Shown piece by piece: positions 16,089 through 62,855 of a DNA stretch of 64,000 nucleotides (position 1 is the stretch's first letter; every line of letters begins with the position of its first letter). The stretch comes from Takakia lepidozioides. Lineage: Eukaryota; Plantae; Bryophyta. The stretch is from contig CM060732.1 of NCBI GenBank assembly GCA_030704615.1, positions 71,610,001-71,674,000 of the forward strand. Direction: 5' to 3'. A model generated the notes under the pieces. That model worked only from the letters and a program-made list of their open reading frames with translations. It did not search any database and was not told the origin of the DNA. The position numbers and the translations under genes are program-made.

Positions 16089-19000
16089 TCACCAGTAATC
16101 ACCACAAGAACAAGTCCCATCTTCAAAGTGGTGGAAAGTAGTTAGCATCCCATACAACAATTGCTTGGCCAACAATCTTTGAGATGAATTTGGTGGAGGT
16201 GTGGCAGTCTCCACACACTCGAAGATTCTTGATGAGTCGTGCTGATCAGCCCAAAACCAATGGCCAGCTTCTCATTGTGGTGGCTAAGAGAAAATTCCTT
16301 TCCTCCACATCATGCAATAAAAAGCGTGTGTCAGGCATATACCCTGCCTCCTTCATCTGCCCAGACAATCTCCTCAGCTCAGCATGGATTTCCTTAATTC
16401 TGGGATGCAACTTGTCATCTGGCTCCTTTCTAACCCCTCTGACCTTCATCATTCTTCTCACCTTTGCAGTATCATCCCACCTGCCAGCTGCAGCATAGAT
16501 GTTTGATATAACACCACATAAGTCGCGGCATCCTGTTCATCCCACTTGAGGATAAATGTTGCTGCACATTCAGCCATCTCCACATTGCATGGATTCTGCA
16601 GGCACCAAGCAAAGCCTTCCACACCACAACATCTGGATTGATTGGCATTTTATTAATCAGGTCCACTGCCTCATCCAGTTGTCCCGCACGTCCAAGAAGG
16701 TCCACCATGCAGCCAAAGTGCTTTACTGTCAGATTGATACCATGATCTTCACTCAGGGAATCGAAGTAGCGTCTTCCTTCATTCAGTAGGTCAGTGTGGC
16801 TGCAGGCAGAGAGAACACATATAAAGGTGATACTGTCCGGCTTCAAGCCTTTCTTTTGCATTCCTTCAAATAGTCGCAGGACCTCCCTATGACAACCATG
16901 CTGGGCATATCCTGCGATCATCGCATTCCACGACACCACATTTCATTCAGCCATATTGTCAAATACTCCCTTTGCATCCTCATTGCACTCACATTTCGCA
17001 TACAAGTGAACCAGGGCAGTGTCCAGAATGACATTTGGTACAATTCCAGCTTTGACAATGTCACCATGAACCTCTTTGCCATTTTTCAGGGCTGCCAGGC
17101 TTGCACACGCATTGCAAACGCACACAAACGTGATGTGGTCGGGCTTCACCCCTTCCCCCAGGCCTCCATCCCGCACCCCTGCTGTGCATATCCTACAAGC
17201 ATGGCGTTCCATGATACCAAATCTCGTTCAGCCATATTGTTGAACACTCCCTCGACATCCTCAATGCTCCCACATTTGGCATACATGTCTACGAGGGTAT
17301 TGTTCAGAATCACATCAGGTACAATTCCAGCTTTGGCGATGCAACCATGCACCTCTTTGCCCTTTTCCAGGGCTGCCAGGCTTGCACACGCATTGCAAAC
17401 ACAAACAAATCTGATGTGGTTGGGCTTCACCCCTTTGCACAGAATCTGCTCATAGGTCTCAAAAGCATTCCTACCACACCCATGCTTGGTAAATCCTGCC
17501 AACATTATATTCCACATGATGAAGATCGTTGAGGCATTCTGTTGAATTCTTCCGCATCTTTTGCTCATAGGTCCCCAAAGCCTACATCCCACACCCATGC
17601 TGGGCATATCCTATGATCATCACATTCCACGACACCACATCCCGTTCAGCCATGTTGTCAAATACTCTCTTTGCAACCTTCATGCTCCTGCATTTCACAT
17701 ACATGTCAACAAGGCTATTGTTCACAATCAGATTTGGTACAAGTCCAGCTTTCATATGTCAGCATGGACCTCTTTGCCGTTTTCCAGGGCTGCCAGTCTC
17801 GCACAAGCCTTGAGAATGCAAACAAATGTGACCTGATAGGGCATCACCCCTTGCTGTATCAGTTGATCATATGTCTCGAAGGCATTCCTACCACAACCAT
17901 GCTTGGTATATCCTGCCACCATATGTGTTGAACACTAGACAGGCCTCCCTTACACTCCCATATTTGGCATACATGTTAACAAGGGCAGTTTCCCAATTAA
18001 TGTATGGCGAAATTCCAGCTTTGATAATGTCAGCATGGATATCTTTGCCCTTCTCCAAGGCCACCATGCTGGCACCAACATTGAGAACACAAATGAATGT
18101 GGCTTGCACACGCATTACAAATGCACACAAACGTGATGTGGTCGGGCTTCCCCCCTTCCCCCATCATGGACCTCTTTGCCATTTTTCCAGGGCTGCCAGG
18201 CTTGCACAAGCATTGCAAACGCTCACAAACGTGATGTGGTTGCATTTCACCCCTTCCCCCATCATTTGCTCATAGGTCTGATCCAAGGCCTCCATCCCGC
18301 GCCCCTGCTGTGCATACCCTGCAAGCATGGCGTTCCATGACACCAAATCTCGTTCAGCCATATTGTTGAACACTCCCTCCGCATCCTCAATGCGCCCACA
18401 TTTGGCATACATGTCCACGAGGGTATTGTTCAGAATCACATCTGTACAATTCTAGCTTTGGTGATGCAACCATGCACCTCTTTGCCCTTTTCCAGGGCTG
18501 CCAGGCTTGCACACGCACTGCAAACGCACACAAACGTGATGTGGTCGCGCTTCACCCCTTCCCCCATCATTTGCTCATAGGTCTCCAAAGTCCTCCATCC
18601 CACGCCCTGCTGTGCATATACTGCAAGCATCACATTCCATGACAAACTATCTCGTTCAGCCATATTGTTGAACACTCCCTCTGCATCCTCAATGCTCCCA
18701 CATTTGGCATACATGTCCACCAGGGCAGTGTTCAAGATCACACCTGGTACAGTTCCAGCTTTGGCGATGCAACCATGCATCTCTTTGCCCTTTTCCAGGG
18801 CTGCCAGGCTTGCACACGCATTGCAAACGCACACAAACGTGATGTGGTCGAGCTTCACCCCTTCCCCCATCATTTGCTCATAGGTCTCCAAAGCCTCCAT
18901 CCCACGCCCCTGCTGTGCATACCCTGCAAGCATCGACCACATCTTGTTCAGCCATTTGAAAACTCCCTTCGCATCCTTCATGCACCCACATTTGGCATAC

Positions 19001-20300
19001 ATGTCCACCAGGGCAGTGTTCAGGATGACATCTGGTACAAATCCAGCTTTGACGATGTCACCATGGACCTCTTTCCCCTTTTCCAGAGCTCCTAGGCTTG
19101 CACACGCATTGCAAACACAAACAAATGTGTTGCAGTTGGGCTTCACCCCTTCGCACATCAATTGCTCATAGGTCTCCAAAGCCTCCATCCCGCATCCTTG
19201 CTGTGCATATCCTGCAATCATCGCACTCCACGACACCACATCTCATTCAGCCATACTGTCGAACACTCCCTTTGCATCCTCGATGCACTCACATTTGACA
19301 TACATGTCCAGCAGGGCAGTGTTCAGAATGACATCGGGTACAATTCCCCCATCATTTGCTCATAGGTCTACAAAGCCTCCATCGACCCACGCCCCTGCTG
19401 TGCATACCCTGCAAGCATCGCGTTCCACGACACCACATCTTGTTCAGCCATAGTGTTGAAAACTCCCTTCGCATCCTTAATGCACCCACATTTGGCATAC
19501 ATGTCCACCAGGGCAGTGTTCAGGATGACATCTGGTACAAATCCAGCTTTGACGATGTAACCATGGACCTCTTTCCCCTTTTCCAGTGCTCCCAGGTTTG
19601 CACACGCATTGCAAACACAAACATATGTGATGTTGTTGGGCTTCACCCCTTCGCACATCAATTGCTCATAGGTCTCCAAAGCCTCCATCCCACCCCTTGC
19701 AGTGCATATCCTGCAATCATCACACTCCACGACACCACATTTCATTCAGCCATACTGTCGAACACTCCCTTTGCATCCTCGATGCACTCACATTTGACAT
19801 ACATGTCCAGCAAGGCAGTGTTCAGGATGACATCTGGTACAAATCCAGCTTTGACGATGTCACCATGGACCTCTTTGCACCTTTCCAGGGCTGCCAGGCT
19901 TGCACACGCATTGCAGCTCTAACAATGTCGCCATGGACATGATCTTCGCCCTTTTCCAGAGCTGCCAGGCTTGCACATGCATTGCAAAGGCACACAAACG
20001 TGATGTGGTCGGGCTTCACCCCTTCCCACATCATTTGATCATAGGTCTCCAAGGCCTCCATACCACGCCCCTGCTGTGCATACCCTGCAAGCATCGTGTT
20101 CCACGTGATCAAAGATCGTTGAGGCATTCTGTTGAACACTTGGTGAGCATCCATGATGCTCCCGCACTTAACATGCATGTCGACAAGGGTGTTGAGTAGA
20201 AAAATATTTGGCGTGAATTCTGCTGAAATGCCTCCTTGGTTTAAAGTCTGTAGAGCCTCTGTCAGTCTACCTGTCGCACAAAGCATCTTCACATGCCCAG
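16089..20300 (-). pseudogene. PLS-class PPR-E-DYW RNA-editing factor pseudogene with internal duplications
   Basis: Many P-L-S triplets (VSWNAMLAGYAQQG / ITFVCVCNACASLAALEKGKEVH / NTALVDMYAKCG); E domain (HFGCMVDLLGRAG, VWKALLGACRIH); DYW domain [30 protein letters not shown] ending at 16089. Numerous frameshifts and stops. Confidence 0.92.
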
Positions 20301-20555
20301 AAGTGCCAGAAGAGGTATTGTGGATCCTCTCTTAATCCTCTTTCAGAAGTTGTGGTCATGGTTGAGGTGCCTGATTTTATCAACTGTGCCGCTGCAGCTG
20401 CTGCCTTTACTTAACCATCCGCCCATGCAGGTTTCTTGTAGCTATTGATCCACAGAAACATCAGGAAGAATACCAAATCATGGTACTGACAGGAGCCAAG
20501 AGCCCACCTTTGCAGGATGGACAAACTTCTTCAGATCGTACATTAAAAAAAGCCA

Positions 20556-21510
20556 CACCCTTCCCCCATCATTTGCTCATAGGTCTCCAAGGCCTCCATC
20601 CCGCGCCCCTGCTGTGCATATCCTGCAAGCATGGCGTTCCAGGACACCAAATCTCGTTCAGCCATATTGTTGAACACTCCCTCCGCATCCTCAATGCTCC
20701 CACATTTGGCACGCCCAAAGAGTTCAAAAGCCTCCTCATCTTGACCATGCTGAGCTAATAATCCTGCAATTATAGCATTCCATGAGACCACATCTCGCAC
20801 ATGCAGCTTGTCAAAAACTTGGCGTGCACTGAGCACACTGGCACACTTGCAATACATGCTGACAAGGGCAGTCCCCACTTGGACATCTGAATCCAGATTT
20901 GATAATGCCTGCATGGAGCTGCTTTCCATGTTCTAGGGCTATTGGACTGCCACATGCATTTAGAATGCTTACACACATGCTCATGTTTGGTTTCATGCCC
21001 TCTTGTTGCATTTGCCCAAAGAGTTCAATTGCCTCATCATCATGACCATGTTGAGGAAGTCCCGCAATCATTGCATTCCATGAGACCACACTTCGTTTGG
21101 ACATTTTGATGAACACTTGTTGAGCATCCAGCACACTCCCGCATTTGCAATACATGCTGACAAGGGCAGTTCCCACTTTGATGCTCATGAAGGTGATTTC
21201 GTTTGGCTCCATACCTTCTCGTTGCATTTGCTGAAAAAGTTTGAACGCCTCCTCACCATGCCCTTGCTGTGTTAATCCTGCAATCATCGCATTCACCCCT
21301 TCCCCCATCATTTGATCATAGGTCTTCAAAGCCTCCATACCGCGTTCCTGCTGTGCATACCCTCCAAGCATCGTGTTCCATGACACCACATCTCGTTCAG
21401 CCGTAGTGTTGAAAACTCCCTTTGCATCCTTAATGCACCTACATTTGGTATACATGTCCACCAGGGCAGTGTTCAGAATGACAACAGGTACAATTCCAGC
21501 TTTGACAAGA
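20556..21510 (-). pseudogene. Second PLS-PPR fragment (chimeric)
   Basis: ORFs 20543-20929 and 20811-21608 contain VGTALVSMYCKCG and VSWNAMIAG motifs with abrupt motif fusions. Confidence 0.85.
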
Positions 21511-21720
21511 CCTTGTTGGTTGCCAAATGTGTACATGAATGGCTGAGCAAATGACAAGTGAACGCATGTACTACCCCAATAGCCTTCGAACAGGGCAAGG
21601 GCCTCCATGCAGGGTTGATCAAAGCTGGAATGGGAAATAATCGTGGAATGGAGACGGGCCTACGCATTACAGACAGGGAGACAATTTAATTTGTCAAGGA
21701 AGAGGTGCCCACAATCTGAC

Positions 21721-30170: not shown

Positions 30171-31784
30171 TCAAAGTGTTGAGGTCTGATACAGATGGGC
30201 GGGCAAGCGTGGCTTAGCGAAGGCAAGCAATGGCTTCAGCTTCGGTGTGGTCAGCCCTTCACTTTCTTCCATATCGATATCGGTAGCGCCTTTCTCCAGC
30301 AAAGGGGTCCAGTCGAAGCAGTGAATCAAGCTCGCAAGGCCCAACATTACTATTGTCGTTCCCAGAGATCCACCGGGGCAGCCTCGGCGGCCAGCACTGA
30401 AAGGGATGATACGCATCTTTGTGTCCCTGATATCGACACGCTCTGCATCATGAGTAGACTTTTCGCCGCCGTCTTCCATCCATCTCTCAGGTTTGAATTC
30501 TTCTACTTCCTCCCACAATCTAGGATTGCGCCCAAGGCCCCACCCACTGATCAATACCTGTGTGTCTTTCGGGATGATGTAGCCTCCCAGCTCACTATCC
30601 TCCATAGCTAAGTGCGGTATAAGAAATGCTCCAGGGGGGTGCATACGAAATGTCTCCTTCACCACGCACTCCAAGTATTTCAGCTTCCCCAAATCTGACT
30701 CAAGGACCATCCGTTCACACCCTACCACATGGTCGATTTCACTTTGTACTTTGCGAAGCAAGTCAGGGTGCCTGATCATCTCCGCCATAGCCCATTCGTT
30801 CGTGACAGCTGAGGTGTCAGTCCCTGCTGCTATCATATCTTGCACCAAGGCCTTTACAGTTTGGTCGCTAAGGTGTTCCTCACCATTCTCCCCGGGGAGG
30901 GATAATAAGACGTCCACAAAATCGGTTGCAGCGTTAGGGTCAGTGACCTCCTTAGACTTCTTTCTGTGCTCCTCAACAATTGACGAGTGGAAGGCGTCCA
31001 TGCTCTTCTCCACTTCTATCATCTTCTTCTCGTGGCCTCCCAGGTCTAACCACCTTAGAAACGGCAGAAAGTCTCCAATAGGAAAGACACCCAATAGCCG
31101 AAACACCTCGTGTGTTATCTTTTTGAAATCTTGGGCATCACCTTGTCTCGCGTTTCCTGCACCAAAGTACCGCTTTCCCAGAAGCATGCGTGTCATCACG
31201 TTCATAGACAGTGCTCCCAACGCGTCCTTGAGATCGGAAGCCTCGCCCTTAGAAGCGTCAGTCCAAACCGACTGTACCAAGTGACCCGCCTCTTCTGTGC
31301 GCTCCTTTCTGAACCCCTCCAGACGTTTGGGAGTCAAAAGCTCCATCATGCAGATGCGGCGCCCATTCTTCCAATGATTTCCATAGGGGGCCATCGCCAC
31401 ATCACCACCACCATAAGCCAGACGATCCACCGCGATTTTCTTTGGTCGGGATGCAAAGACATGGTCCTTAGACTTCAGAATCTCCTTGATGATATCTGGA
31501 TCGTCTATTACAACTGTACGCACTGAACCTAGACGTAGATATATTATGGGCCCAAATCTCCTATGTAGAGCATAGATATTATGATGGGGGAGGCGTCCCA
31601 AGTTCAGAAGATTGCCAATCACAGGCCATCCGGATGGCCCTGGAGGTAACAGCTTGCCTTTGTAGTATCGTCTGCGCTGTAGATAATTTTTCAACAAGCG
31701 TGCCACCAATGATAACACAATCAGCCAGAAAGCAACTAACACGATCCTTTCAAACTGTTCGAGAAATTGTCCCACGATGTCCAT
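30171..31784 (-). CDS. CYP703: Cytochrome P450 CYP703 family (sporopollenin fatty-acid in-chain hydroxylase), single exon
   Basis: LPPGP hinge; LAYGGGDVAMAP, RRICMMELLTPKRLE, DFVDVLLSLPGENG and QDMIAAGTDTSAVTNEWAMAE recalled as CYP703 signatures; ETFR; PFSAGRRGCPG heme motif. First ATG at 31784. Confidence 0.93.
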   Translation of the reverse strand: MDIVGQFLEQFERIVLVAFWLIVLSLVARLLKNYLQRRRYYKGKLLPPGPSGWPVIGNLLNLGRLPHHNIYALHRRFGPIIYLRLGSVRTVVIDDPDIIKEILKSKDHVFASRPKKIAVDRLAYGGGDVAMAPYGNHWKNGRRICMMELLTPKRLEGFRKERTEEAGHLVQSVWTDASKGEASDLKDALGALSMNVMTRMLLGKRYFGAGNARQGDAQDFKKITHEVFRLLGVFPIGDFLPFLRWLDLGGHEKKMIEVEKSMDAFHSSIVEEHRKKSKEVTDPNAATDFVDVLLSLPGENGEEHLSDQTVKALVQDMIAAGTDTSAVTNEWAMAEMIRHPDLLRKVQSEIDHVVGCERMVLESDLGKLKYLECVVKETFRMHPPGAFLIPHLAMEDSELGGYIIPKDTQVLISGWGLGRNPRLWEEVEEFKPERWMEDGGEKSTHDAERVDIRDTKMRIIPFSAGRRGCPGGSLGTTIVMLGLASLIHCFDWTPLLEKGATDIDMEESEGLTTPKLKPLLAFAKPRLPAHLYQTSTL

Positions 31785-47560: not shown

Positions 47561-48229
47561 TAGGTGCCAAGCTGACGCAAGATCGGAGCTGAAACCGCAA
47601 CGCCCTCAAGATCAGAGCCCCCGTGCCTTGTAATATCAATGACAACCAACTTCGCCCCACTAGACCAGGGCCATGATGAAGCTTCGCAGGTCAATTCTCG
47701 GTGATGCAGGAAGCGCGACTTAATCGCTCTGGACGGCAAACGTTCATCGTTACGTAATTCAAATTATTTCCTAGCAAATTGTCTGGCTCTAGACACCACC
47801 GCACCAGGCTCAAATAAAGATCTCGTGAACAGGGCTTCGTGATGACTGGTTGACGCAGCAAGGTCACCCACGACAGCCCTTTCTATGCGCTCAAACCAAA
47901 ACTGATCCTCCTCACAGATCTCACACAACAGGTCATCCACTTCTTGTGACAACTCGATATCCCTTTCCAACTCTGTTGCTTGGTGCCTACTCTCAAAATA
48001 CTCACGTCCAGGATCAACAAAGTTGTCAAAGTTATAGTACTCCGGATCACAACTATCTAGAGAGTTGTCAGATTTCTCAGACCTCGGCGACCACGCCTTT
48101 GCCTCATCTAGATTAGCATAGTCATTACTACCAGGAGAACCAACGAAACAACAAGGGCTGGAATGCAAGAAATAGAGAATGAATATCCCTGTGAGTGACT
48201 AGCTGCCTAAACAGACAGATCAAGCTCCC

Positions 48230-51200
48230 ATAAATCAACCTTGCGTTGACGCAAGGTTGATTGATGGGGTTGCAGCATAGTCCAAAATGTGTCCCGGAAC
48301 CCTCTGCCGAACCCACAAAATGCCTTGCGTTGACGCAAGGTCGTTTTGGGGGATTCAAGCAATCTACTTCCCCTACCTTGCGCTTCATGAACTGGATTTC
48401 AGAGGCTGCGAATGCACATAAGAGGCACCCAAATCAACCTCGCGTCAACGCAAGGTTGATTCGAGGGCTGCATACGTTTGGTTTTGTACCCAAAACATAC
48501 ACCTTGGAGCTCGGATATGGACCTTGCGTTGACGCAACCTTCTTTTCCTCTGATATTTGGTCTGTGCTTCAAATCTGGGCTGCACGACCTGCATGACCTC
48601 TTCTATTCATTCCAGTGAGGTCGACATCAATCTTGCGTTGATGCAAGGTTGATGTGGGGCTCCCGGTTCCACATTGAACAGAAAGAAAAAGCAAAAGGCA
48701 AATGAGGGTTGATTATAACCTCTAGTTTCTTCTTCGCAACACTTGATGATGCTTCAGCAATGTTCGTCTTTTCCACGGGGTCTGGAGGCAACATGCTTCC
48801 AAGCAGATCCGGGTGGTGGGAAATAGTGGCAAACGGCATCGTGTCCGCCCTTGGTTCTTCTCTTGCAGCGCTTCATCTTGAGCCCAGCTGACTTCTTCGT
48901 CGTCCCCTCCCTCAATTGCAGGTTGTTCTTCGATCGCCTCCGGCACCGCTTCAAGACCTTCCTCTCAAAATTGTGGTTGCAGATTCGGGTGTAGCCCTTC
49001 ATCTTCATCTCCGTCTTGCCCATTCGCAGTTCCCGTCAAGGTGCCTTCCTCATCCTCTCCTTAGCGCGTGCCCTTTGCTTGTTTGATGTGAAATAGAGTG
49101 TTTGTCGGCGCCTTCTTCTCCCACATGATGACGTGACCATCTCGGCAGAATCCAGGGTTGCAGTGAGGAGAAGGAGAAGAAGGAAAAAAATGGCACTGCG
49201 GGAGGTTCACCGGCGGTCCATCTGCGCCAAGATGATCGCTGGAAACGTCCTGACCGCCACATGCACAGTCCACATGCATGGTCGACACGTGTCCAATCTG
49301 CCGTTAACAATACCGCCGGAAAGCATTTAATCATCATCCACCAAATTTCGTCCGGGTCGACCTCTCATCCGCAAATTTGATTCTGGGGTACCCACTTTTG
49401 GGGTGTTTCGGAGGATTGTGCAGTTGGTACAGTTGTACAGCTATTCAGTTGCCATTAAACATTGAGTGGAAATGGGCACCTCGTCTGCCCTCTCTGACAC
49501 AAGAGCCAATTGGCGGCTATGTCATTGAAAATTTTGGTTGGGGGTTTGGATGTCCAAGACAATGGTGGGGCAGATGTGGAAAAATAGTTGGCTTCTTTCT
49601 TCGGTGTGGCATTTGGGCTGACATCCTCCACTCCGCATTTGGGCACTTTTTGACCATACATTGGTTCGCATGTCCACACATTTGTTTGATGTGTCAATCC
49701 GCATTTAAAGACCTATATGTGAAAGCGACAGCTACAATTGTGTGTAAGGACGTCTTACATATAGCCCAGAAATTCCACTTCAGTACAGCCTGCACTCAAA
49801 AGCAACATTGGACTTTGGACTGTGTGCTTTGAAGCAACATTAACAGATGGCCTCCCAGGCCTTGGGCTCCCTGGACGCAGACTTCTTCAGCGAGGACCAT
49901 CCGGTGCCATTTTTGTACGAGGTGGATGATGATGGTTTTGCACTGGTGCATGAACACGTGCTCGCGACGCAGTTTCGGTTGGAGACTGGCACTCTATTCC
50001 TCGAGAGGGAAGTGTACGATGCCAATGGAAATTTGCTCAAGTACGCCTTCCAGAAACCTTCGCAGACTGCACAAACCACACAATGGAGAGTGCCTCCAGG
50101 CAGATACAGGGTGTTGAGTGCTCCTCAATGACAGTCTGCAGGATCATTCCTTCATTAACGTTACTAGACTCTTGGAACGGCAGCATCAGTGGCCCAGGAG
50201 AAAACACCCGTGGTTGTTAAGAAGGAGTCTAGTAACGTTAACACAGTCTTGGAGCTTTTAGACTCCTCCTCTGAGGACGCTTGTGAAATACCGCCAGTGG
50301 ATCAGCCATGTCCAGTTCAGGAAGCAGATGTAGAAGAGATCACCAGTGTCATTCCCAAACTGAAAGCCATGGGTGGGATGGCAGGATTCAAGAGTGAGTT
50401 GAGGGGGATTGACTGGAGCACTTTCAATGTTCAGCGTGTGACATTCTTGCCAGAATCATTTGGTGGTAATATTGTTTTCGAGCTGCCTCCTCCGGGTCGA
50501 GTGGGGGGCATTTCCAGTCTCATGGAAGGAATGGACAAAAATCACGATGGACACCCTTGGTGCCGCACAAAAACCTCCAATATTCACAACCATGACAACC
50601 TCATATTCAGGAGAACAGTCTGTAATGGGCACCTGAAATGCGAGAACACGAAGTGCAGACACTTTGCACTGTCAGGTCTGCAAAACCAAAGCGAATGGGA
50701 TGGTGTCACTGAGAATCCATTCAAGCCTGGGGTGACACCACCATACAGTAACACTGTTGTGTGCAAGTTTTGTAGGCTACCACCTTGCTGCCTTGCATTG
50801 TGTGGTGCCAGGGCCCAGAATGTACTATGTAGTGCATCGATTCAAAACCCTGACTAGAGCCTGTGTCCATTTCGGTTTTTACAACCACCCTCTGTCCAAG
50901 GGGGATTACAGAGAGAGTGTCGAGACAGTCTCGCGTCTGATAAGGCAAGAGTTGGATACCAATCCAACTGGAACCACTTCTGCAATTGCCATGGGGGCGA
51001 GCAAGTCTTTTTTGGAAAGCCGTATTCTATGTGCATCAGATTCGGTTGGAGGAAAACTGGAGGGACCGGCTTTGGACATTGTTCTGGACCATTTTTCAAC
51101 ATTGACTTCTCCAAACATTAGGAATCAAGTGAACGCTTTGAGAATGGGCTCTGGGAGCCGAGGTTATATGGACAATATTATGGATTTGAAGAAAAGGAGC

Positions 51201-51885
51201 ATGTACGACTACATCCAAGACAGCGTCTTCCTGGGGCAAGGAGCGAGGAAAGTATTCTTGTTTAAACTGTCCACAAAAGGTGAGGGCAGCAGAGTCAGCC
51301 TGGTTCAACGTATGCAGAAGGGTGGCGATGTTGGCAACTGTTTATTTTTTATCACGTGAAGAGGTTTAAAGACTAGACCACAATGGCATGTCATGTTTAC
51401 GACCCTGTGTACCAGCGAGTCATGACAATTGCAGTGTGTGACATGCAGTCAGAGGACACCGAATCACAGTAGCTCATGTGGGAAGCTCTCATTCGCGTTA
51501 TGGCCTCCAATGGTCTCCCATCTCCAAATTTTGTTGGTTTCATGGCCGACAGTGCTCAAGCGAACTTCAACGCTGTCCGCATTGTGTTCGGGACGAGAGA
51601 TCCAAAAGTTCCAATGCCTGGAAGAGAACATACGTGTCTTTTCCATTGGACACAATCCCTGGACAAACACACAAAGACAGACATCAAGCCGGATATGCAG
51701 AGTATGCATCGTCAACTGTGCAAACAGTACAAAGACGCCAAAACTATGGGGGAAGCGAATACATTGTTCCAGACAATTCGTGCCTGGTGGTACTCATCTG
51801 GAGCGGCATCGGAAGACAACATGAGGGCACTGGAAGACTAGTTTGCATTTTGGCACTTCCGTTACCGACAGTGGGGAGCGGCCAT
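48230..51885 (+). mobile_element. MULE-like transposon, second copy: upstream palindromes plus transposase pseudogene (49847-51885)
   Basis: Zn-finger region RRTVCNGHLKC...CKFC...ACVHFGFYNHP; DDE core TTMACHVYD...FMADSAQANFNAV...CLFHW (MULE D...CxxH); repeated CCTTGCGTTGACGCAAGG at 48239-48650. Confidence 0.78.
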
Positions 51886-53899
51886 GACTTGTTTTTAGAT
51901 CATGAAAAGCGGTTCAGCCTAGAGTGCAGGGATTCGTGCATAAGCCTATCCAAAGCAGATAGAGTGCAAAGGCGAACATGTTGCAGGTTTGCAATGGATA
52001 GAGAGGCAGTCAGCCTGTATTGAATGGTGGCGTTGCATAGCTCAACGCTATGGCAACCAAGTTTGGGCTTCTAGTGTGAAGCGGAGGAGATGCTGGCCAC
52101 AAGTAGGCGAACTGGTGGTCTTCTTCATCTGTAGGCCGAGTTAAGGAGCTGCAGGAATGTGGGCTGCACATGGGAAGCTAGCGTGTTGCAGGTTGGAGAT
52201 GATATGATCAGCTCCCGAAACTAGTTGTTGCGGGTAGATGAGGAGCAGCCGAATGGTGGAGCTGCGAGGGGATGCATCGCAGCCTGTTGGGAGCTTCAGC
52301 TCCAAGCTCATGAAGAGGTATGAGTGAAGAGAGGGGGCTGGTCCATCTTGTGTGCAAGTCAATGCACTTGTGAAACATGTGCTTGAGTTGGAAGTTTCAA
52401 TCTGAAACTCTAGCACTGTAAAGGCTCTTGGAGTGGCAAGAGTGGGGCTGGAAGGGCAGCAACTAGGTGTCCTAGAGCCAGGGAATGTGCAGTAGAACTG
52501 CAGCTACACCAAGGTTGTAAAGGTGTGTATTTTCAGATTTGTTTTTGTGAGCTTCATGAAGAAAATGGAGCTAGTTGGGCAGCATATAGCTTACTTGTTG
52601 AGTTGGGGGCACTTCTAGGCCATGAGAGCTCAGGAGTGCAGGGTGACAGGGCTGATGGCTCTGCAGAAGCCATAGCTCAGCGACAGCAGGTGCAAGAGCA
52701 AACCCCAGCTCGGGGAGAGATTTCAAAAAATAAAAGGACCGCCAGTGCGGCCGCCAATCTTGTTTTTTTTTTAAATAAATTGAAGCGACCGCCATAATGT
52801 ATTTGCCACCGCCATCGTGTCTGCTTAAATGACAGTATTTTACCTGGTACTATTTTTACCAGAATATTCCCCGAACCTGACGTGATGGAGGTCCCGTCAG
52901 CGTCAGGTCTGACGTGACCTGATGGACGGACGTGATGCTGATAACCGAGCCTTGAGGCCCTTGAGGGAAGCATAGTGGGGACACCATTTAGAGGGGAGAC
53001 TTGAGGACGAGTAGGGAGGCCGGAGTTGGTCAAGGTATGAAGAGCACCTAGGAAAAGGGCCACCTTGAGCACCATTCTACCGAGCTAGTAGAGCATCCCG
53101 AGCTCCACCATCTGATGTAAGGGTGATCCACCACCACCCCCTCTTTTAATTGCTTTGAAATTATTTCATTTGATTGATTTTCACTAAGCCGAGAGCTCGC
53201 AATGCTAGGGGCTAGTGTCTATGTGTGTGCATGAAGAAAAACTAACCCTCTTATGGCAAGAGGATGCTTTGACATGATCAAAAGGGAAGCATTGTGATTT
53301 ACCCCAAAGGGATAGACCTTGGGAGCATTATATAGTGGCTTGAGAGCCCATAGCTTGTATGATTTATGAAGCTAGTTGTTGATTTTCAGATCTGGAAAAT
53401 ATGGCGCTCCCACGTTCCCACCAGGTTATCATCATGTTCCCGCGCTCCCCTGGACATTCCAAAGGGATCAACGAGATCTTCTGGAGATTCCCCACCTTTG
53501 GGAATTTTTTATATTTCTTTAATTATTTCATTTTTTCTGAAGGTGAAAACGCATTGTTGTCAGAAGAAAAATTGGTTACGAATGTCTAACCTTCTCTGTT
53601 GCATCCACACGGGTTGTGGCTAGATGATGCAGCTTCTCGAGTGTCAACGTGGGCTTAAGAGCGCGGGAGTAGTGCTTCCCCACCTCCACCAGAAAGTTGG
53701 CACCAAGGGTGGGATCAGCAATGGCCACGTACTTCACCATCCGCAACTTGTACTTGATGCGAGCCTTTGCCTCGGTAGCTTGGAGATACGATTCCAGCCC
53801 ATGAAGACCCACAGCAGGCCATGGTTATGAGTTCCATAAGCAGAACTCTCAACCTGTTGGGCACCTATTTCAAGACTCATGTTCCTTCCACTCAGTTGG

Positions 53900-55757
53900 C
53901 AGCATTGCGGGAGGAGCTCAAGCAAGAGCTTGAGGCAAGAATTGTCAATGAGTGTGCAAACAAGGTGGATGTGGAGGCCAACCTCAAGTTGTAGAAAGAA
54001 TTGGAGGACACTAAAGCTGCCCTACAGCTTGCGAATGAGAACTTAATTGGGGCGGGTCTTGAGCAGGAAAAAATACATGAAGTGCATAAGCAGCAGTTAT
54101 ACCAGATGCAAGTTCAGCATGAAGGCAAGTTGCATGAAGTGAAGTTGCTTCATACGGAATTGGAAGCAATTAATCAAAAAGTGCTCATATAGTGTGCCAC
54201 ACTAACGACTAATCTGGAGATGGTTGCAATGGAGGTCAAGAAGCAAGCTGAGAGATGTATATCGGCGGAGACAGAGGCAATGGAGCAGGGGAAACTCATT
54301 GTTGACATGAAGTATACTCTCTGTCGCAATGAGGATACAATTCAGCAGTTGCACCAGGTCAATGCCCAGAAGGACATGAAACTATTTGAGTTGCAGCAAA
54401 CAATCACAGTATGGGAGAATGTACTTTCTGTGAGTGAAAGGGCCTGGAAAGAAGCCAATAATCTGTCAGCTGCCTATGCAGCTCTGGTTGAGCCTCATGC
54501 GAAGCGCATGGAGAGTTTACAGCAGCAGTTGGAAACATACAGGCTCAAGGAGGAGCAGGATCTCCGTGGTGTTACACAAGACTTGGTGGATAATCATCTT
54601 TTTGCAAGAGTGGTTAACACAAGGACCAGTGGAAGGAAAATCACCAAGGAAGCTGACAAGACGAGATAAATGATCTCAGGCTATGGGTGCAGAACATTGC
54701 CACAACCATTATAGACAATGTCTATAGTCGGATAGCTGAGTTGTAGGAGGATGTGGAAGGGCTTCAGACTCAAGTGGATGACTTGAGCTTCAACATTGGA
54801 AAAATGGCCTTTGTTCCTGAGGAACAGCTCATGGCTACTTACTTGCAGGTACGGACTTTGATTTTTCAATCTTCAGCACAGGAAATGCAGGACTTGCCAA
54901 CATCAGGAGGGACTGTGGCAACAACATCACAGCAGCCACACCAGGTAGACAGTATTGATACCATGGCACTGCAGTAATCACTGTCTGAGGTTTGGGGTGA
55001 TGCTTCTTTTAACCCACCTACTACTCCTGCTGCACTTGAATATAATCGGGCTATGATTTTGCCCTTCAACCAAATTCCCATTGTTATGGATTTGGCTTGG
55101 AAAGAATTCAGTCCTCCAGAGTCTTTGGCACACTATTACCAGATTATGCGCATTTGGTTGCCAGTGATATTTGTATGATGTGAGGATCATGCTTCAACGG
55201 AATCCAAAACTCCGTTCTTGGTTTACTTTTGCTTTGGAGAACTTGGGCCTTGACCACATCTTTCCAAAAGGGCATGAAACCAGAAAATGGCTACACTTTT
55301 CCAAAGTCATTGGCATACCACTCAGCTATACAGATGACGAGCTGCGGGCATATACTAATCTTGCCCGAAAGAGGTTGGCACAAGTCTTACAATATAAGCT
55401 TCCAGACATGGTGGGCATACATTGTATGCCAGTCAAGCTTCCTGAGAAGCCACAGAAGGTCAGTAAACAGCACGGCCAACGGTGGGAAGATGATTCGAAT
55501 ACTACTGGTTCTGTGGAGGGAAATTTTGACATGGCTGAGGATTATGAGATACAAATGGCGGAGAAGAAATGATGGGGATCTCCTATGCTTGAGAAGTTGC
55601 CTCCATATCAGCCAAAGGTAGGGCAGTCAGCTCCATCTAGTCGACAGTCATCCCCACTAGCCAAAGACGTGGCTTGGGCTCACACACAGAGCCCTCCGAG
55701 GGACTCTCACCAGCAAAAGGGTGCTTGTTCGCAAAGGTTTGCTCATCCTAAGCAGTA
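53900..55757 (+). pseudogene. Degenerate extra ORFs (coiled-coil protein and a second unknown ORF) at the 3' end of an LTR element
   Basis: E/Q/K-rich heptad ORFs 54001-54977 and ORF 55171-55572, followed by PPT-like AAAGGGGGAGGGA at 55781 and LTR-like sequence. Confidence 0.5.
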
Positions 55758-55939
55758 AACCGTGAGGTTACGGCTTTTTCAAAGGGGGAGGGATAATATT
55801 AGAGGGTTGTCTGGGACTTAGACAGTTTTACGGGTTCTGTGGGGTACCCTTACTTTTGCGCAGACTTAAGGGTAGTAGACTTAAATAGACACAAGCCTTA
55901 GGGGTGGTAGACAGGCTCACACAGTCAATAGTCATAGGC

Positions 55940-56036
55940 TTACACAGCCTGACATAGCCTGTCACAGTCAGACACAACCTGACACAACCCGACATAGCCA
56001 GTCACAACCTGACACAACCTGGCACAGCCCGTCACA
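55940..56036. repeat. 10-bp tandem repeat (GACACAACCT-like) in presumed LTR
   Basis: gacatagcct gtcacagtca gacacaacct gacacaaccc gacatagcca gtcacaacct... Confidence 0.8.
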
Positions 56037-56536
56037 TTTTTCACAGGGAACTGTCATCACGGGAGGGAACGACTGTGTGGGAACAAAATCTGCAGAGGGA
56101 ACGATCTGTTGATGCTTGATACATGCAAGCTGTAGAGATGTACTGTAGAGCAGAATAGAGACACCATGGCTTCGGCCTGATACATGATAGATATTAATCT
56201 GATTCCTATTTCATACGTCTCACAATGTGTAGAGAGACCTGAGTGAAGCTGTGGAATAAATGCTTAAGTAGATGGAACATGGTAGATTGCAGAAGCAATT
56301 TGATACTTAAACCTAGGCAGTAAGGTAACTTACTAAACATGAATGCAAGAAGGAACCGATATAAGGAAGCACCCCATGATACATTAGCTGTAGGTCATGA
56401 CTGATTGTTCTGAGCGGGAGGGGTACTTGGAGATATCCAACTCTTCTATCTTGGAGTTTCCACCTCGGATAACGAAGGGATGGGTGAGTAAAAGCCGCTC
56501 AACAGAGATCTCCCGTCAATAAAAATCTACCAACAC

Positions 56537-59174
56537 ACACATTCAACCCATCATCAATGAATCAATCTGGGAATTACTTCAAGATTCTGGCTTGCCATAC
56601 TTATCAAGTAAACCACAAGATCTTATATAACATTGCCAATGTTACACAAAGTCTTGTGGTTTACATGGTAAGTTTGATCATGCACTCTTGAAAACCAATT
56701 AATCATTGTGGTTAATCACCTGGGTTATTAATAGTGTTCTGTGTCAGACTGGTCATCTTAAACAGACATAAATGAATGGTCATTACGAGCACGGGAGACC
56801 TCCCGTCAAAGAGAGACGGGATATCTTCCAGGACCGCAACAACGGGAGGTCTCCCTGCATAGTAAAGCCGGGAGATCTCTCATCAATCCACCTCTGCCAG
56901 CAAAACAATTTCAACCCATTATCATTTGAAGCAAGGATAGAGCAGAGACATTCCTGCATGTGCATGGCCATAGTTACAAAGTGATACCCAAGATGTTAGA
57001 TAACATCGCCAGTGAGTTAACTAAAGTCTTGTGTATCACTTTGTAAGAATACAGACGCATTCAGAGAAGTCCTGCAATGAATGTAGCTAATCACGTGGGT
57101 ATCAGTAGTGTTTGTGAAACAGTAGTCTTACGCGAGGTTCATCTCAAATGATTGTTCAAATGAATGGTCAAAAGGATATTCACTGGACTTCTGCCAACTA
57201 ACACTTTCAACCATTCATCATTCTTAGCAGTGACAAATCAGGCTTGTGATGGCCAGACTTACATGAAAGCCACAAAAGATTTTACATTACATCGCCAGTG
57301 TGTAATGTAAAGACTTGTGTCACCCTCTGTAAGTATTTGGCTGCACTCCAAATGTCCCGTCATGAATGTTACTAATCACTTGGGTATCAGTAGCGTGTCG
57401 TGCCAGCCAAGTCCTACTCGAGGTTCATCTTGAAATACTTGAATGGTCAATGGACCGGAAGGGAGAAGGTTTCAATGATCCAAGTCCTACGAACTGGATA
57501 CAGTGAAAGACACAGATGAACCTGGTCAAAGAAGGAAGGGAGGTCTCCCGTCAAAGGAGGTCGAAAAATGGCTTGGAAAATATGGTGACTTCCTACGCAC
57601 ACTTTCAACCCATTATCTGAAGCAATATCAGAGCTCTCACAATCTGGGAATTACTTCAAGTTGTCAGTCTGGCCATACTTATCAAGTTAAAGATCTTATC
57701 CAACATTGCCAGTGTTGCATAAAGTCTTGTGGTTTACAAAGTAAGTATGTTCAGGCACTCTTGAAATCCCCGTAATGAATGTGATTAATCCAAGGGGGGG
57801 GTCACTATATGTATTTTTTTCATATCACATGCGTACAAAGGTATATTTATACTAGGCTATATTTTTAAAATTTTGCATTTTCTTCCACCCTATCTTTAGG
57901 TAATATTGTAAAACCCTTTGTTTTCTAACACCCTATTTTTCTTTATAATTTTCTTTTGCAACAATTAATTAGACCCTATTTTAAATTATCATTTTAAATA
58001 ATTGTAAAATTTCAAAGCATCTACACAAACAAGTACATTCCATATAACATAAGTCAAATGCCGGACCCAAGAAAAAATTTAATTTTCATTAGTCACGAAC
58101 TCATTCAAAACCGCAACATCACTTGGATATAAAGAGTACAAGTCTTGAGATGGTTCAAATGCCATAGTCACTGTTGAGATTATGGTATTAACATCAATCC
58201 ATTGTGTATCACTGGAATCATATTTGAACTTCAGGTGACCTATACCTGATTTCATCCTGATGGATTAAAGCTGGATGCAATATGAGAAACTTCACAAGGA
58301 TGGATACAGTAGATAAAACCCTTTATTACATTAATTTTTAAAGTAAAATTCTGGATTTTTTGTGACCATTTTTTTTAAAAAATTGGGTGAAAGGATATTG
58401 CCTTACCATATTTTATAAGTAAAAAATTTCTAAAATTTACCTCAAAAAAAAATTGCACCCTATATTTGTTCTCACGTGGTTTTGTAAATACGGGGAGTGA
58501 CCCCCCCAAGGGTTAATCACCTGGGTATCACTAGTGTCCAAATTTATCTTAATTTACCGCCGGAGGTCTCCCGCTAAACGGACGACGGGAGATCTCCCGC
58601 CAAAGGATCGACGAAGCCAATACACAATTTCAACCCATCATCGTTTGAAGCAATGACATTTGCTGCAAAAGCAGAGACATACTTCTTGCATGTGCATTGC
58701 CATACTTACAGAGTGATTTGCAAGATCTTAGATAACATCGCCAGTGTGTTACCTAAAGTCTTGTTAAATCACTTTGTAAGAATACGGACGCATTTGGGAA
58801 AGTCCTCGAATAAATGCTTGTAATCATCTGGGTATCAGTATTGATTCGTGTCAGTCTAGTTTTGCGCGATGTTGATCTCAAACAGAGATATGAATTATCA
58901 AATGGAGGACGGGAGGTTATTGTCGGAGGTTCATATTAAGACATAGATAAGAATGATAACTAGAGGACGGGAGGTCTCCCGCCAAACGGACGACGGGAGA
59001 TCTCTCGTCAATGGACTTCTGTCCAGAAACACTTTCAACCCATCATCACTTGAAGCAATGACACAACATTCACAAGCAGAGACATACTTCCCGTATGTGC
59101 ATTGCCATACTTACAAAGTGATCTACAAGATCTTAGGTAACATCGCCAGTGTGTTACCTAAAGTCTTGTGTATC
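56537..59174 (-). ncRNA. Array of six structured-RNA-like units (rod hairpin with double kink-turn base); units 56537-56737, 56904-57113, 57201-57398, 57598-58537 (interrupted), 58622-58843, 59029-59174 (truncated)
   Basis: Conserved + strand blocks TTCAACCCATCATC ... CATACTTAC ... AAGATCTT ... CATCGCCAGTG ... AAAGTCTTG ... GTAAG ... TAATCACCTGGGTATCAGTAGTG; stems differ between units but stay paired. Strand is inferred from the k-turn motifs. Confidence 0.7.
57789..58512. mobile_element. Non-autonomous TTAA-targeting (piggyBac-like) element inserted in array unit 4
   Basis: TTAA at 57785-57788 and 58513-58516; TIRs GGGGGGGTCACT..GTATTT / AAATAC..AGTGACCCCCCC; right end AAGGG-TTAA. Removing it restores GTGATTAATCACCTGGG as in sister units. 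Confidence 0.82.
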
Positions 59175-59595
59175 TTCCGTCAAGGTATTCCCAGCTCTTG
59201 AGGATTTCCATCTCCAAGTCGTCTTCGACAACAGGGACCCTGAATCCCAGCCGAATCGCGAATCCCATCAGATCACTACTCAGACTCATGGCATCAACGG
59301 AGAACCCAAATACCTTCTCCCCTTTCTGGCCGTTCTCGTGGATGAACACAACAAGGGTAACTATGTTATTCCTCACCGAGTCCTCAATTTCAATTCCCAA
59401 CACATCACAACACTGAAGTGTTTTCTTTTCCGCACTGATCTGGTAACGGAAGATGGCTTTCTCTGGGTTCGGGGAGTCCGCAACGTCAATACCCCAGTAG
59501 TCGATACTCATCTTTAGCTCGTAGAAGCCCTGATGCTTTATTGTGAATCCTTCAAGGTGTGGGTATATGAAGGAACCGGCAATGTCAGCGCTCAT
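59158..59595 (-). CDS. Hypothetical protein (~145 aa from MSADIAG), 3' end fused to array unit 6
   Basis: Open ORF 59158-59673 with globular protein-like composition; last codons run into the hairpin. No recognisable motif. Confidence 0.45.
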   Translation of the reverse strand: MSADIAGSFIYPHLEGFTIKHQGFYELKMSIDYWGIDVADSPNPEKAIFRYQISAEKKTLQCCDVLGIEIEDSVRNNIVTLVVFIHENGQKGEKVFGFSVDAMSLSSDLMGFAIRLGFRVPVVEDDLEMEILKSWEYLDGRYTRL

Positions 59596-59996
59596 TACAA
59601 CGATTGATTCCTTTGGAATCTGTGTTCTGGCAGCACAATCAACATAAGAACACCCCGTTAATATAAACACCAAAAAACAACTAACATAACGGTCTTTCAG
59701 AACCGTATCGACGTATGTCTCAATTCAGGGACGGGAGATCTCCCGTGATCAGCAAAGAACAAGACCACCAACATGGATAATTCACATTGTCAATATGACA
59801 AATGCGATACCAGAATAAAAGGACGGGAGATCTCCCGTGATCAACACAGCACATAAACAACAACTTGGAGGGTTCAGAACGATAATAGAAATAATAAGTA
59901 CTTTATAAATAAAAAACGCAGGGGTGCTTCAGGTACACTAGAGATGTACTTGAATACAAAGACGGGAGACCTCCCATGATCAGCTCCACCTACCAT

Positions 59997-60662
59997 CTAT
60001 GGTTTGCTAGAATCTACGTCAAGAAATTGCCCTATGGTCACACCACAATGCATTGGGCTATCTAGCCGGGTCTGATATGCTGTGCGGATCTCTGCTCTCA
60101 GGTTATCCTGCTTAGGATCCCTTCCGGGTGTCGCCGGGAATATTTAGGACTCCAAGAGTCGTTGTCCGAAACCCAATCAGGGAATATCTTCGAGATTTCG
60201 TCGATTTCGACTGAGTTCGACGCCTGTGCACTCAGGGAATGTGATCCGGGAATATCTACAAACTCTACTAAATCTTGTTTCTCAATATACCCTCCTGGTG
60301 TGTACGTGTGCTCTGCAGGGGTGTATACTGGTGAATCTGCTGGAATATACATGTGCTCTGCAGGTGTGTATACTGGTGAATCTGCTGGGATGTACTCGAC
60401 AGGGGTGTATTCCGGTGAATCTGCTGGGATGTACTCGGCAGGGGTGTATTCTGGTGTATTCTGGTGAATCTTCTGGGAAGTACTCAGGAGGGGTATGGTT
60501 TTCTCGGACGTACTCTAGTGGACCGTAGGCAGCTTCTCCTAGGGTATATTCCATTTGGAAAGGAGGAGCGGAATCCGGTATGACTGGAGTATTGTTGACT
60601 GGAGAATTATTGACTGGAGTATTGTTCTTCTTGCATTTCCCTTGTTCAATGTTTGTCCGCAT
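59997..60662 (-). pseudogene. Frameshifted ORF with SPEYTP / YIPADSP tandem peptide repeats
   Basis: ORFs 60282-60662 and 60098-60352 join through a frameshift; 33-39-bp DNA repeats at 60290-60480. Confidence 0.5.
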
Positions 60663-60802
60663 CGAAAAGTGCTTGGATTTCAGACATCAGCGTCTCATCT
60701 TCTAGGTAATGACACCTTGGCCAACGTTTTGGCTGACACCCTAACAGAAATTCAGCGTATGCAGTGCCTGATTCCTGACATATTCTCCTTTTAAAAAAGA
60801 AC

Positions 60803-61200
60803 ATGATAAGGGAGTGAATCAATGTCAGTGACACCTTTCCGTGTGAACCTTTTACCGATGGACAGAACTGACTCTCTCACGCTCTTCGACCCTTCGATGT
60901 AAATCTCAAGGGAGGTCTCCCGTGACATTTCTATCCCGTGAGAATAATCACTGGAGATTAAGCACAGGAGACCTCCCCTGAGAATGTCCACGGGAGACCA
61001 GAGATGATAAGGGAGTGAATCAATGTCAGTAACAACTTTCCGTGTGACCTTTTTTTACCGATGGACAGAACTGACTCTCTCACGCTTTTCGACCCTACGA
61101 TGTAAATCTCGGGGGAGGTCTCCCGTGAGATTTCTATCCCATGAGATTAGTCACTGGAGATTAACCACGGGAGACCTCCCCTGAGAATGTCCACGGGAGA
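60803..61200. repeat. Tandem direct repeat, 2 x ~200 bp (60803-60997, 61004-61200)
   Basis: Both copies begin ATGATAAGGGAGTGAATCAATGTCAGT and end GAGAATGTCCACGGGAGA. Confidence 0.92.
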
Positions 61201-61539
61201 TCTCCCCTGTGAAGCACGGGAGACCATACCAGGAACCAAATATATAGCGAAACCCACAGATTTCATCCATATTTGGAGACTTCATCCATAGTTTAAGTTT
61301 TATTTGGTTTTATTTTGCGATAATATGCATGTAAAAACTGGGAATTTTCGACATAATATTTTATTTCATTTTTTTAGGTTGAAATTTGGTGAAAACTCGC
61401 CAATAAAAAAAAACATCGGCGGATCGGATGCGGACGGATCGGACGGTTCAGATGGCATCGACGTGGTCAGCATACAGGGAGCGCACGTTCGGGTACGTCA
61501 GAGTACAGGAGGCCCCCCGTGCCAGTATTTATTGCTTGT

Positions 61540-62044: not shown

Positions 62045-62206
62045 GAACCCTTTGCATCCTCGATGCTCCCACATTTCGCATCCATGTTCATCAAAGCAGT
62101 GTTCAAAATAAGATCTGGTATGATTCCAGCTTCGACAATGTCAGCATGGACCTCTTTGCCCTTTTCTAGGGCTGCCAGGATCACACACACATTGCAAACA
62201 CAACAT
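62045..62206 (-). pseudogene. PPR motif fragment fused to the integrase fragment
   Basis: CVCNVCVILAALEKGKEVHADIVEAGIIPDLILNTALMNMDAKCGSIEDAKG, same family as the 16-21 kb cluster. Confidence 0.85.
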
Positions 62207-62855
62207 GGGTGATGTACTTCCTGTGTCAATGTACAAAGGGGGTGGCGAGGGCGGATGTGTACGAAAAGAAAAAGGGATATGAAAGAAGAGGGGCTGCACT
62301 CATCGGAGTAGATGAGGGAAGGGAAGACGAAGGAGATGGAGGTCGCGTCTGACTTGCAAATCTCGCTAAGTCCTCAACCCCCTCACCGCGACTTACGAAG
62401 CAGAGAGAGTCTCCTTTACTCTATAGAAAATCGACGCGTGTCATTATAGTTAAGAAATAATGCCATATAGGTTACAATTAATAAAAATATCCCTGGGGGG
62501 TCCAACCCGCAGTCGTTAAAACAACTCCAAATTATCATAATATTAAAAATATCTATTTTCCTTTTTTTTGGAAATCGACGTATAAATCGGCGCCAAACCC
62601 GTAGTGGTTTCGGCGACTTCTGATCTTCATCCGCCATGCCACCGTGGCCCCAATATGCCTGCGACGACTGGCAAGTCGTCATTAAGAACCTGGAGTCCAA
62701 GGCGCAGTCGTTTCGGACAGAATTGCAACCGCAAGTCGGGTGTGAAAAGCACCTATTCCTTGTAGTGTCTGGGAGCGTCAAGAATCAGGAGATTGATGAA
62801 GGGACCTCTGGCTGGCTGGGAACCATCTCCCAGTCTACGTCGGCATCGAGCTGCA

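Follow-up and report, generated by a model that had tools for sequence, protein, structure and literature searches.

A six-unit hairpin array on a palindrome-rich, mobile-type element of Takakia lepidozioides: a candidate small-RNA locus with matches to a neighbouring retrotransposon

The 64,000-nucleotide stretch of the Takakia lepidozioides genome analysed here (referred to in its whole length as the window) contains a tandem array of six related hairpin units, in which a scaffold made up of the loop, the upper stem and the closing blocks is fixed while the 10–12-bp paired core has diverged with compensation. Three arms of the array are complementary, beyond chance, to a single open reading frame (ORF) of an adjacent LTR retrotransposon. 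The explanation that we favour, and for which we see an even chance, is that of a polycistronic miRNA-like or hp-siRNA-like array carried by a multi-copy, palindrome-rich mobile element, with targets that would include the retrotransposon ORF.

Organisation of the array and its parent element

The six units are located where the original prediction had placed them, with loop centres at 56636, 57009, 57295, 57709, 58741 and 59146 (Table 1), and the loop-plus-stem pattern occurs at these places only, giving six exact matches in the 64-kb window and none in 100 shuffles. When the 727-bp insert is removed, the units are spaced by 373, 286, 414, 305 and 405 bp, in line with the predicted interval of approximately 300–400 bp. 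The 101-nt unit cores fold with z-scores between -3.1 and -8.4 when the better strand is taken, and the foldbacks span 160–185 nt from end to end, below the 300-nt ceiling of Axtell and Meyers. Pairwise identity between units ranges from 61 to 85%. The unit tree groups unit 1 with unit 4 and units 2, 5 and 6 together, with unit 3 apart, a topology that fits block and single tandem duplications of one 300–400-bp unit. Homologous spacers and a single orientation are common to all units and, together with this duplication tree, they indicate that the units are not independent MITEs, a possibility that the original prediction had raised against itself.

Although the predicted number of related units is correct, not all of them are full units, as unit 6 is cut at its junction with a candidate exon, so that half of the right arm, together with the right end block, is missing. 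The window copy of unit 4 carries a 5-nt left-arm deletion that is absent from other copies of the array, as represented by the contigs that dominate a DNA run, and other copies also show that the array extends further left (DNA-run contigs, joint to 56508). The MITE inserted in unit 4, which appears to be hAT-like and is probably flanked by an 8-bp target duplication, has an empty site in other copies (joint 57783–58511) and a read depth 10–20 times that of the array. A DNA pattern search of metagenome, viral and prokaryotic contigs retrieved no homologous arrays.

Table 1. Positions within the window of the array, its parent element, the adjacent retrotransposon and the arm-matching sites
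Feature	Position	Strand	Description
Unit 1	56537–56735		core duplex arms 56600–56620 and 56652–56672
Unit 1, conserved end blocks	near 56542 and 56713		
Unit 2	56906–57110		arms 56973–56993 and 57027–57047
Unit 3	57202–57395		arms 57258–57279 and 57313–57333
Unit 4	57600–58537		arms 57678–57693 and 57725–57745; MITE just inside right end block
MITE inside unit 4	57784–58510		727 bp; terminal inverted repeats with G/C runs
Unit 5	58625–58845		arms 58705–58725 and 58759–58780
Unit 6	59030–59174		cut at 59174 at junction with candidate coding exon
16-bp palindrome ACGGGAGRYCTCCCGT	56501–61520		18 copies with ≤3 mismatches; in spacers, introns and right end
Candidate coding exon (second)	59175–59627	-	about 150 open codons; cut by unit 6 junction
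Candidate first exon, same gene	59994–60662	-	frameshifted; SP(E/V)YTP-type repeats
Extra ORF of retrotransposon	53401–55572	+	decayed, coiled coil; between lost internal part and polypurine tract
3' LTR of very high-copy retrotransposon	55794–56504	+	after polypurine tract; ends CA within palindrome
Site 1	53460–53480	+	unit 6 left arm; score 4.0; duplex -23.0 kcal/mol
Site 2	54565–54585	+	unit 2 right arm; score 4.0; duplex -23.7 kcal/mol
Site 3	55368–55388	+	unit 3 right arm; score 3.0; duplex -28.8 kcal/mol

In a DNA run from the same species, the summed depth was even, at 175–950, across the array and the adjoining 2 kb on its right, and uniform at 250–700 over array and gene. The contigs of this run over the array and the adjacent gene were either dominant (180–275 deep) or minor (30–45 deep); if the minor contigs correspond to single copies, the parent element would be present in roughly 7–10 copies. 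A scan of the window for the 16-bp palindrome returned 19 matches against 0.46 expected, and the one match outside the element is at chance level. The predicted location on a mobile element is thus sustained in the sense that depth and palindromes are those of a multi-copy, mobile-type element. We infer the mobility of the parent element from copy number and design; neither a transposase nor a target duplication is seen in it, and a terminal repeat was not found. In the window copy, the left part of the element has been replaced by the LTR retrotransposon.

The element carries a candidate spliced gene on the minus strand, spanning approximately 60662–59175 with a putative splice donor at 59993, part of which is deleted in the window copy. 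The second exon had no homologue among 1.84 billion representatives, the ESM Atlas, Pfam, the PDB or metagenome loci, and its single-sequence AlphaFold model reached a pLDDT of 38. Exon-by-exon searches of the gene brought up no recognisable domain, whether Nop, nuclease or any other; a profile built from seven ParB proteins also found nothing, an absence that is not final given the truncation of the gene. A resemblance of the end of the second exon to amino-methyltransferases is unsupported. The first exon encodes, at 60300–60490 of the minus strand, repeats of 13–15 residues with SP(E/V)YTP, which we take to be reminiscent of the heptads of the RNA polymerase II CTD. Upstream of the gene, two 203-bp tandem copies (60803–61200) each contain a facing palindrome pair 38–64 bp apart plus palindromes at 26-bp spacing, and the right end of the element includes an A+T-rich, MITE-like fragment (61230–61415) with a depth of up to 650. 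Additionally, one plus-strand frame runs without a stop across the hairpins of units 1, 2, 5 and 6 (58578–58820, 58947–59198); it may resemble a LINE reverse-transcriptase motif, which could hint at an inverted-duplication origin, and had no match in Pfam or the PDB. A scan for bacterial promoters stayed at chance level.

Other repeats and gene remnants were observed in the window. A decayed MULE with a GCM-like N-terminus (48176–51888) is 90% identical to the 9-kb Logan contig L001 (1–9055), which encodes a SWIM finger, carries, head to head, a spliced gene of ParB-like type with a DGNHR motif, and has 16 palindromes of its own of approximately 27 bp. This MULE, considered as the parent of the array and rejected, represents another family with a different palindrome, and neither it nor L001 contains such hairpins. 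Positions 1–2500 hold seven 116-bp tandem repeats with a palindrome in each, followed by a MULE fragment 67% identical to L001. A long, decayed array of PLS-type PPR repeats occupies 16400–21600 on the minus strand, and a lone PPR piece at 62048–62215 is fused to an integrase fragment. The window is that of a land plant, its many PLS-type PPR fragments and a CYP703-like gene considered below having been named from their motifs.

Selection on structure and the working strand

In the alignment of the six units, 86% of the cells are paired, compared with 31–44% in slid controls. Both sides have changed in eight of the 32 pairs, against 4.3 expected (a value reached in 7 of 500 shuffles), and the covariation score was reached in none of 500 shuffles; as the units are six related paralogues, these fractions are not true probabilities and provide support without amounting to a formal test. 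RNAalifold recovered the same stem with six compensated pairs. Unit 5 shows a compensatory change in the outer closing stem. The predicted basal replacement of CACT/AGTG by CAAT/ATTG stands for the comparison of unit 4 with unit 5, but not throughout, as unit 2 breaks the pair.

The distribution of conservation between units is a stronger sign of selection on structure than this covariation. The loop is 92% conserved, the end blocks 88% and 85%, the upper stem approximately 70% and the spacer 56%, whereas the paired arm cores are only 46% and 42% identical, below the spacer. Thus, the most variable stretch of the unit is one that stays paired. The proposal that selection has acted on structure and not on sequence is supported, both by the covariation and by the conserved scaffold with its variable paired core, and we consider selection at the RNA level to be highly probable.

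The evidence on the working strand points in both directions. Units 1 and 3 fold better on the minus strand, unit 3 by 7 kcal/mol; the element gene runs in this direction; and only on this strand do the end blocks pair into a stem that has tandem G-A pairs on its flanks together with box C-like words. Two observations favour the plus strand, namely that conservation is higher in the right arms than in the left arms (72% vs 64%) and that the right arms supply the antisense partner at two of the three retrotransposon sites described below. G-U wobble pairs, 27 on the plus strand vs 22 on the minus strand, do not pick a strand. The duplex limit of Axtell and Meyers allows at most five mismatches, with at most three in asymmetric bulges. 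On the minus strand, the 21-nt duplexes of units 1 to 5 have 2, 2, 4, 5 and 3 unpaired positions, where the value for unit 4 uses the insert seen in other copies (the window copy exceeds the limit) and unit 6 is truncated; on the plus strand, the unit 3 duplex exceeds the limit with seven unpaired positions. On the minus strand, the units hence conform to the plant MIRNA criteria as far as these concern structure, and the unit 3 count also speaks for this strand.

No Rfam family matched the window at the gathering threshold (best E values 0.4–4), in agreement with the initial impression that the array contains no known plant miRNA. The proposed polycistronic miRNA-like nature of the array is supported in part, by structure, scaffold and mobile element, but not by transcripts, as neither of two RNA-type runs of small size gave an RNA contig on the array, which is a weak test. 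We consider a small-RNA output of the array likely.

Complementarity to the adjacent retrotransposon

The LTR next to the array ends at 56504, which is also the left break of the window's array copy. It belongs to an extremely abundant family, with an LTR depth of 1e4–3e5, and RNA contigs run past 56504 into other, PBS-like sequence. Other copies of the array element have an intact palindrome pair at the LTR site (joint to 56508, depth 165). RNA-type contigs contain the 3' end of the extra ORF and the LTR without the array, and no further copies of the extra ORF were retrieved. A 10-bp tandem repeat array is present within the LTR (55930–56039). The retrotransposon is inserted within a palindrome of the element (56501–56516), and palindromes make up less than one tenth of the element; as a single case, one insertion into a palindrome is no evidence of targeting, and the position of the matched family next to the array may reflect only its abundance.

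All hairpin 21-mers were scored against the rest of the 64-kb window. Across the window there was no overall excess of good sites for them. Nevertheless, three of the five best independent sites fall in the extra ORF, on its sense strand, and each involves a different unit in the same hairpin register (Table 1). The unit 6 left arm is identical to 53456–53480 at 20 of 24 positions, site 3 fits a scaffold base change specific to unit 3, and at each site its own unit is preferred over the other arms by approximately 2.5 to 12 kcal/mol. The original prediction had drawn the variable arms as stretches of about 21 nt on the plus strand; this holds as one of two options, but the best matches start 3–4 nt upstream.

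The three best unit scores in the best tile add up to 11.0. This sum was reached in none of 500 dinucleotide shuffles with 2.5-kb or 5-kb tiles and in 4 of 500 with 10-kb tiles, in none of 250 shuffles that kept the shared scaffold, and in 3 and 5 of 600 real non-repeat segment sets; the clustering statistic was picked after the hits had been seen, and its post-hoc p of approximately 0.002–0.01 should be read as near 0.01. Each match includes 3–5 imperfect positions and was scored against one decayed target copy, and units 1, 4 and 5 have no match within the window. We also considered that the arms might have been captured from the ORF and drifted synonymously, and rejected it, given that the mismatches are mostly at first and second codon positions. 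Overall, the retrotransposon has a somewhat better than even chance of being among the real targets of the array. The antisense arm is on the plus strand for units 2 and 3 and on the minus strand for unit 6; therefore, one transcript cannot yield three antisense guides. Since at least one match is in sense on either strand, three slicing guides would account for the arrangement less well than silencing at the DNA level or a single match by chance.

Alternative explanations, known systems and significance

Under the favoured explanation, the units would be transcribed together with the element, probably from an intron or the 3' region of its minus-strand gene. A host Dicer-like enzyme would cut one 21–24-nt duplex per unit, with the fixed scaffold determining the register. 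Loaded into a host Argonaute, the resulting small RNAs would silence targets including the extra-ORF gene of the abundant LTR retrotransposon, through either mRNA cleavage or RNA-directed DNA methylation. In moss, DCL3-dependent siRNAs are known to repress transcripts of LTR retrotransposons (PMC2600652).

The same small-RNA array might instead have its real targets in host genes, for example silencing genes, or in other elements, the retrotransposon matches being due to chance or secondary. Rice miR820 offers a precedent, the search covered the 64-kb window only, and a minus-strand 21-mer of the unit 2 left arm, starting from U, pairs with the CYP703-like gene at 31129–31149 (P450 coding strand, minus strand of the window). 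However, the score of this pairing, 3.5, is a single value within the null range, whereas the clustering of matches in one retrotransposon ORF holds under three nulls, and we regard host or other targets alone as unlikely. More doubtful is a neutral origin, in which a tandem quasi-palindrome would give rise to no functional RNA, its arms having been kept complementary at the DNA level through gene conversion or template switching. The wobble pairs free of strand bias, the lack of a transcript contig in the two small RNA-type runs, the richness of the element in DNA palindromes and the dependence of the covariation on six related units only would all agree with such an origin. Yet correction of one arm by the other would remove mismatches, and fixed asymmetric features remain, namely the loop (92%), a fixed mismatch in the upper stem and the end blocks 160–185 nt apart; moreover, a neutral process leaves unexplained why the cores are more divergent than the spacers and why matches cluster in the ORF.

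The end blocks give rise to a further alternative, namely that the units encode stable RNAs capped by kink-turns, whose ends resemble box C/D motifs, or DNA-recognising guides that serve a protein of the element itself, in which case the strand sense of the matches would not matter. On the minus strand, a fixed 5-bp closing stem has tandem G-A pairs on its flanks; its 5' side bears RUGAUUA, where a box C would read RUGAUGA, and its 3' side a block resembling UGAUGA (85–88% conserved). The outer stem shows the compensatory change of unit 5 and a minus-strand G-U pair in unit 3, and the element gene is on the same strand; DNA targeting would also fit the mixed sense of the three matches. Against this, no canonical 3' box D (CUGA) is present, its position being occupied by AUGA or AUAA, the key G is replaced by A in units 2 and 4, and the motif columns are near invariant and so supply no covariation evidence. 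Furthermore, no Rfam snoRNA matched, neither a Nop nor a nuclease domain, nor any other, was recognised in the element gene, and the size and layout of the units are unlike those of TIGR arrays. The stretch upstream of the box D position, where a box C/D snoRNA has its antisense element for rRNA or snRNA, is partly conserved. We hold this alternative to be quite improbable, and the small-RNA array with targets that would include the retrotransposon remains our preferred reading.

The array would work in a similar way to two known systems and is a member of neither. Rice miR820 is a miRNA located inside CACTA elements, with one hairpin per element and a host methyltransferase gene as its target (PMC3459959). 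Like miR820, the array would be a hairpin small-RNA gene in a multi-copy DNA transposon acting in trans in genomic conflict; unlike miR820, it has at least six paralogous hairpins with different cores and candidate targets in another transposon. The Drosophila clusters hp-CG4068 and hp-tHMG consist of tandem hairpins on one transcript, with variable copy number, and take part in intragenomic conflict; they are host loci whose near-identical copies derive from the target gene and act through Dcr-2 and AGO2 (PMC10317233). The array, in contrast, is on a plant mobile element and its units are 61–85% identical; each combines the fixed scaffold with a variable core that is short, and none has long homology to the target.

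Plant polycistronic MIRNA and snoRNA-miRNA genes resemble the array in having several structured RNAs per precursor and in connecting box C/D-type motifs with miRNA hairpins, but there snoRNA and miRNA are separate neighbours in host genes (PMC4660826); in the array, C/D-like blocks lacking a canonical box D close each hairpin itself. TIGR-Tas systems share with the array the repeated units, box C/D-like motifs and variable inserts beside a protein gene of a mobile element, but TIGR units have two unpaired spacers of 8–12 nt, work with a Nop-domain protein and are found in prokaryotes and their viruses (PMC12045711), whereas the array has foldbacks of 160–200 nt, a paired variable core and no Nop domain found. 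Membership in TIGR-Tas was rejected, as the adjacent exons, of a gene partly deleted in the window copy, have no Pfam, PDB, Atlas or sequence match and the spacer layout differs. The algal ParB-methyltransferase transposons, Sola1-1_Ec32 of Ectocarpus (PMC12477816) and Plavaka of Bostrychia (10.1101/2025.02.11.637652), are large and carry accessory genes; neither publication mentions hairpins or palindromes. The MULE at 48.2–51.9 kb of the window follows this design and has palindromes of its own. As in a ParB-methyltransferase transposon of MULE/Sola type, the array element has its own palindromes in introns and ends (18 copies in 5 kb), but unlike in these transposons the gene beside the array has no ParB match.

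Small RNAs encoded by transposons are known in the form of single hairpins directed at the host, as in miR820. In the literature searched, whose coverage was incomplete, there was no description of a transposon-borne hairpin array aimed at another transposon, nor of small-RNA warfare between plant mobile elements. A bolder and improbable possibility is that of a modular, expandable guide array with kink-turn-closed units, the cores of which would be retargeted unit by unit against competing retrotransposons, possibly together with the element's own protein; such an inter-transposon defence cassette might then not depend on host Dicer and Argonaute alone. If the favoured explanation is true, the array would provide direct evidence of small-RNA warfare between plant mobile elements, and its scaffold would also serve as a natural backbone for multiplex artificial miRNAs in bryophytes.
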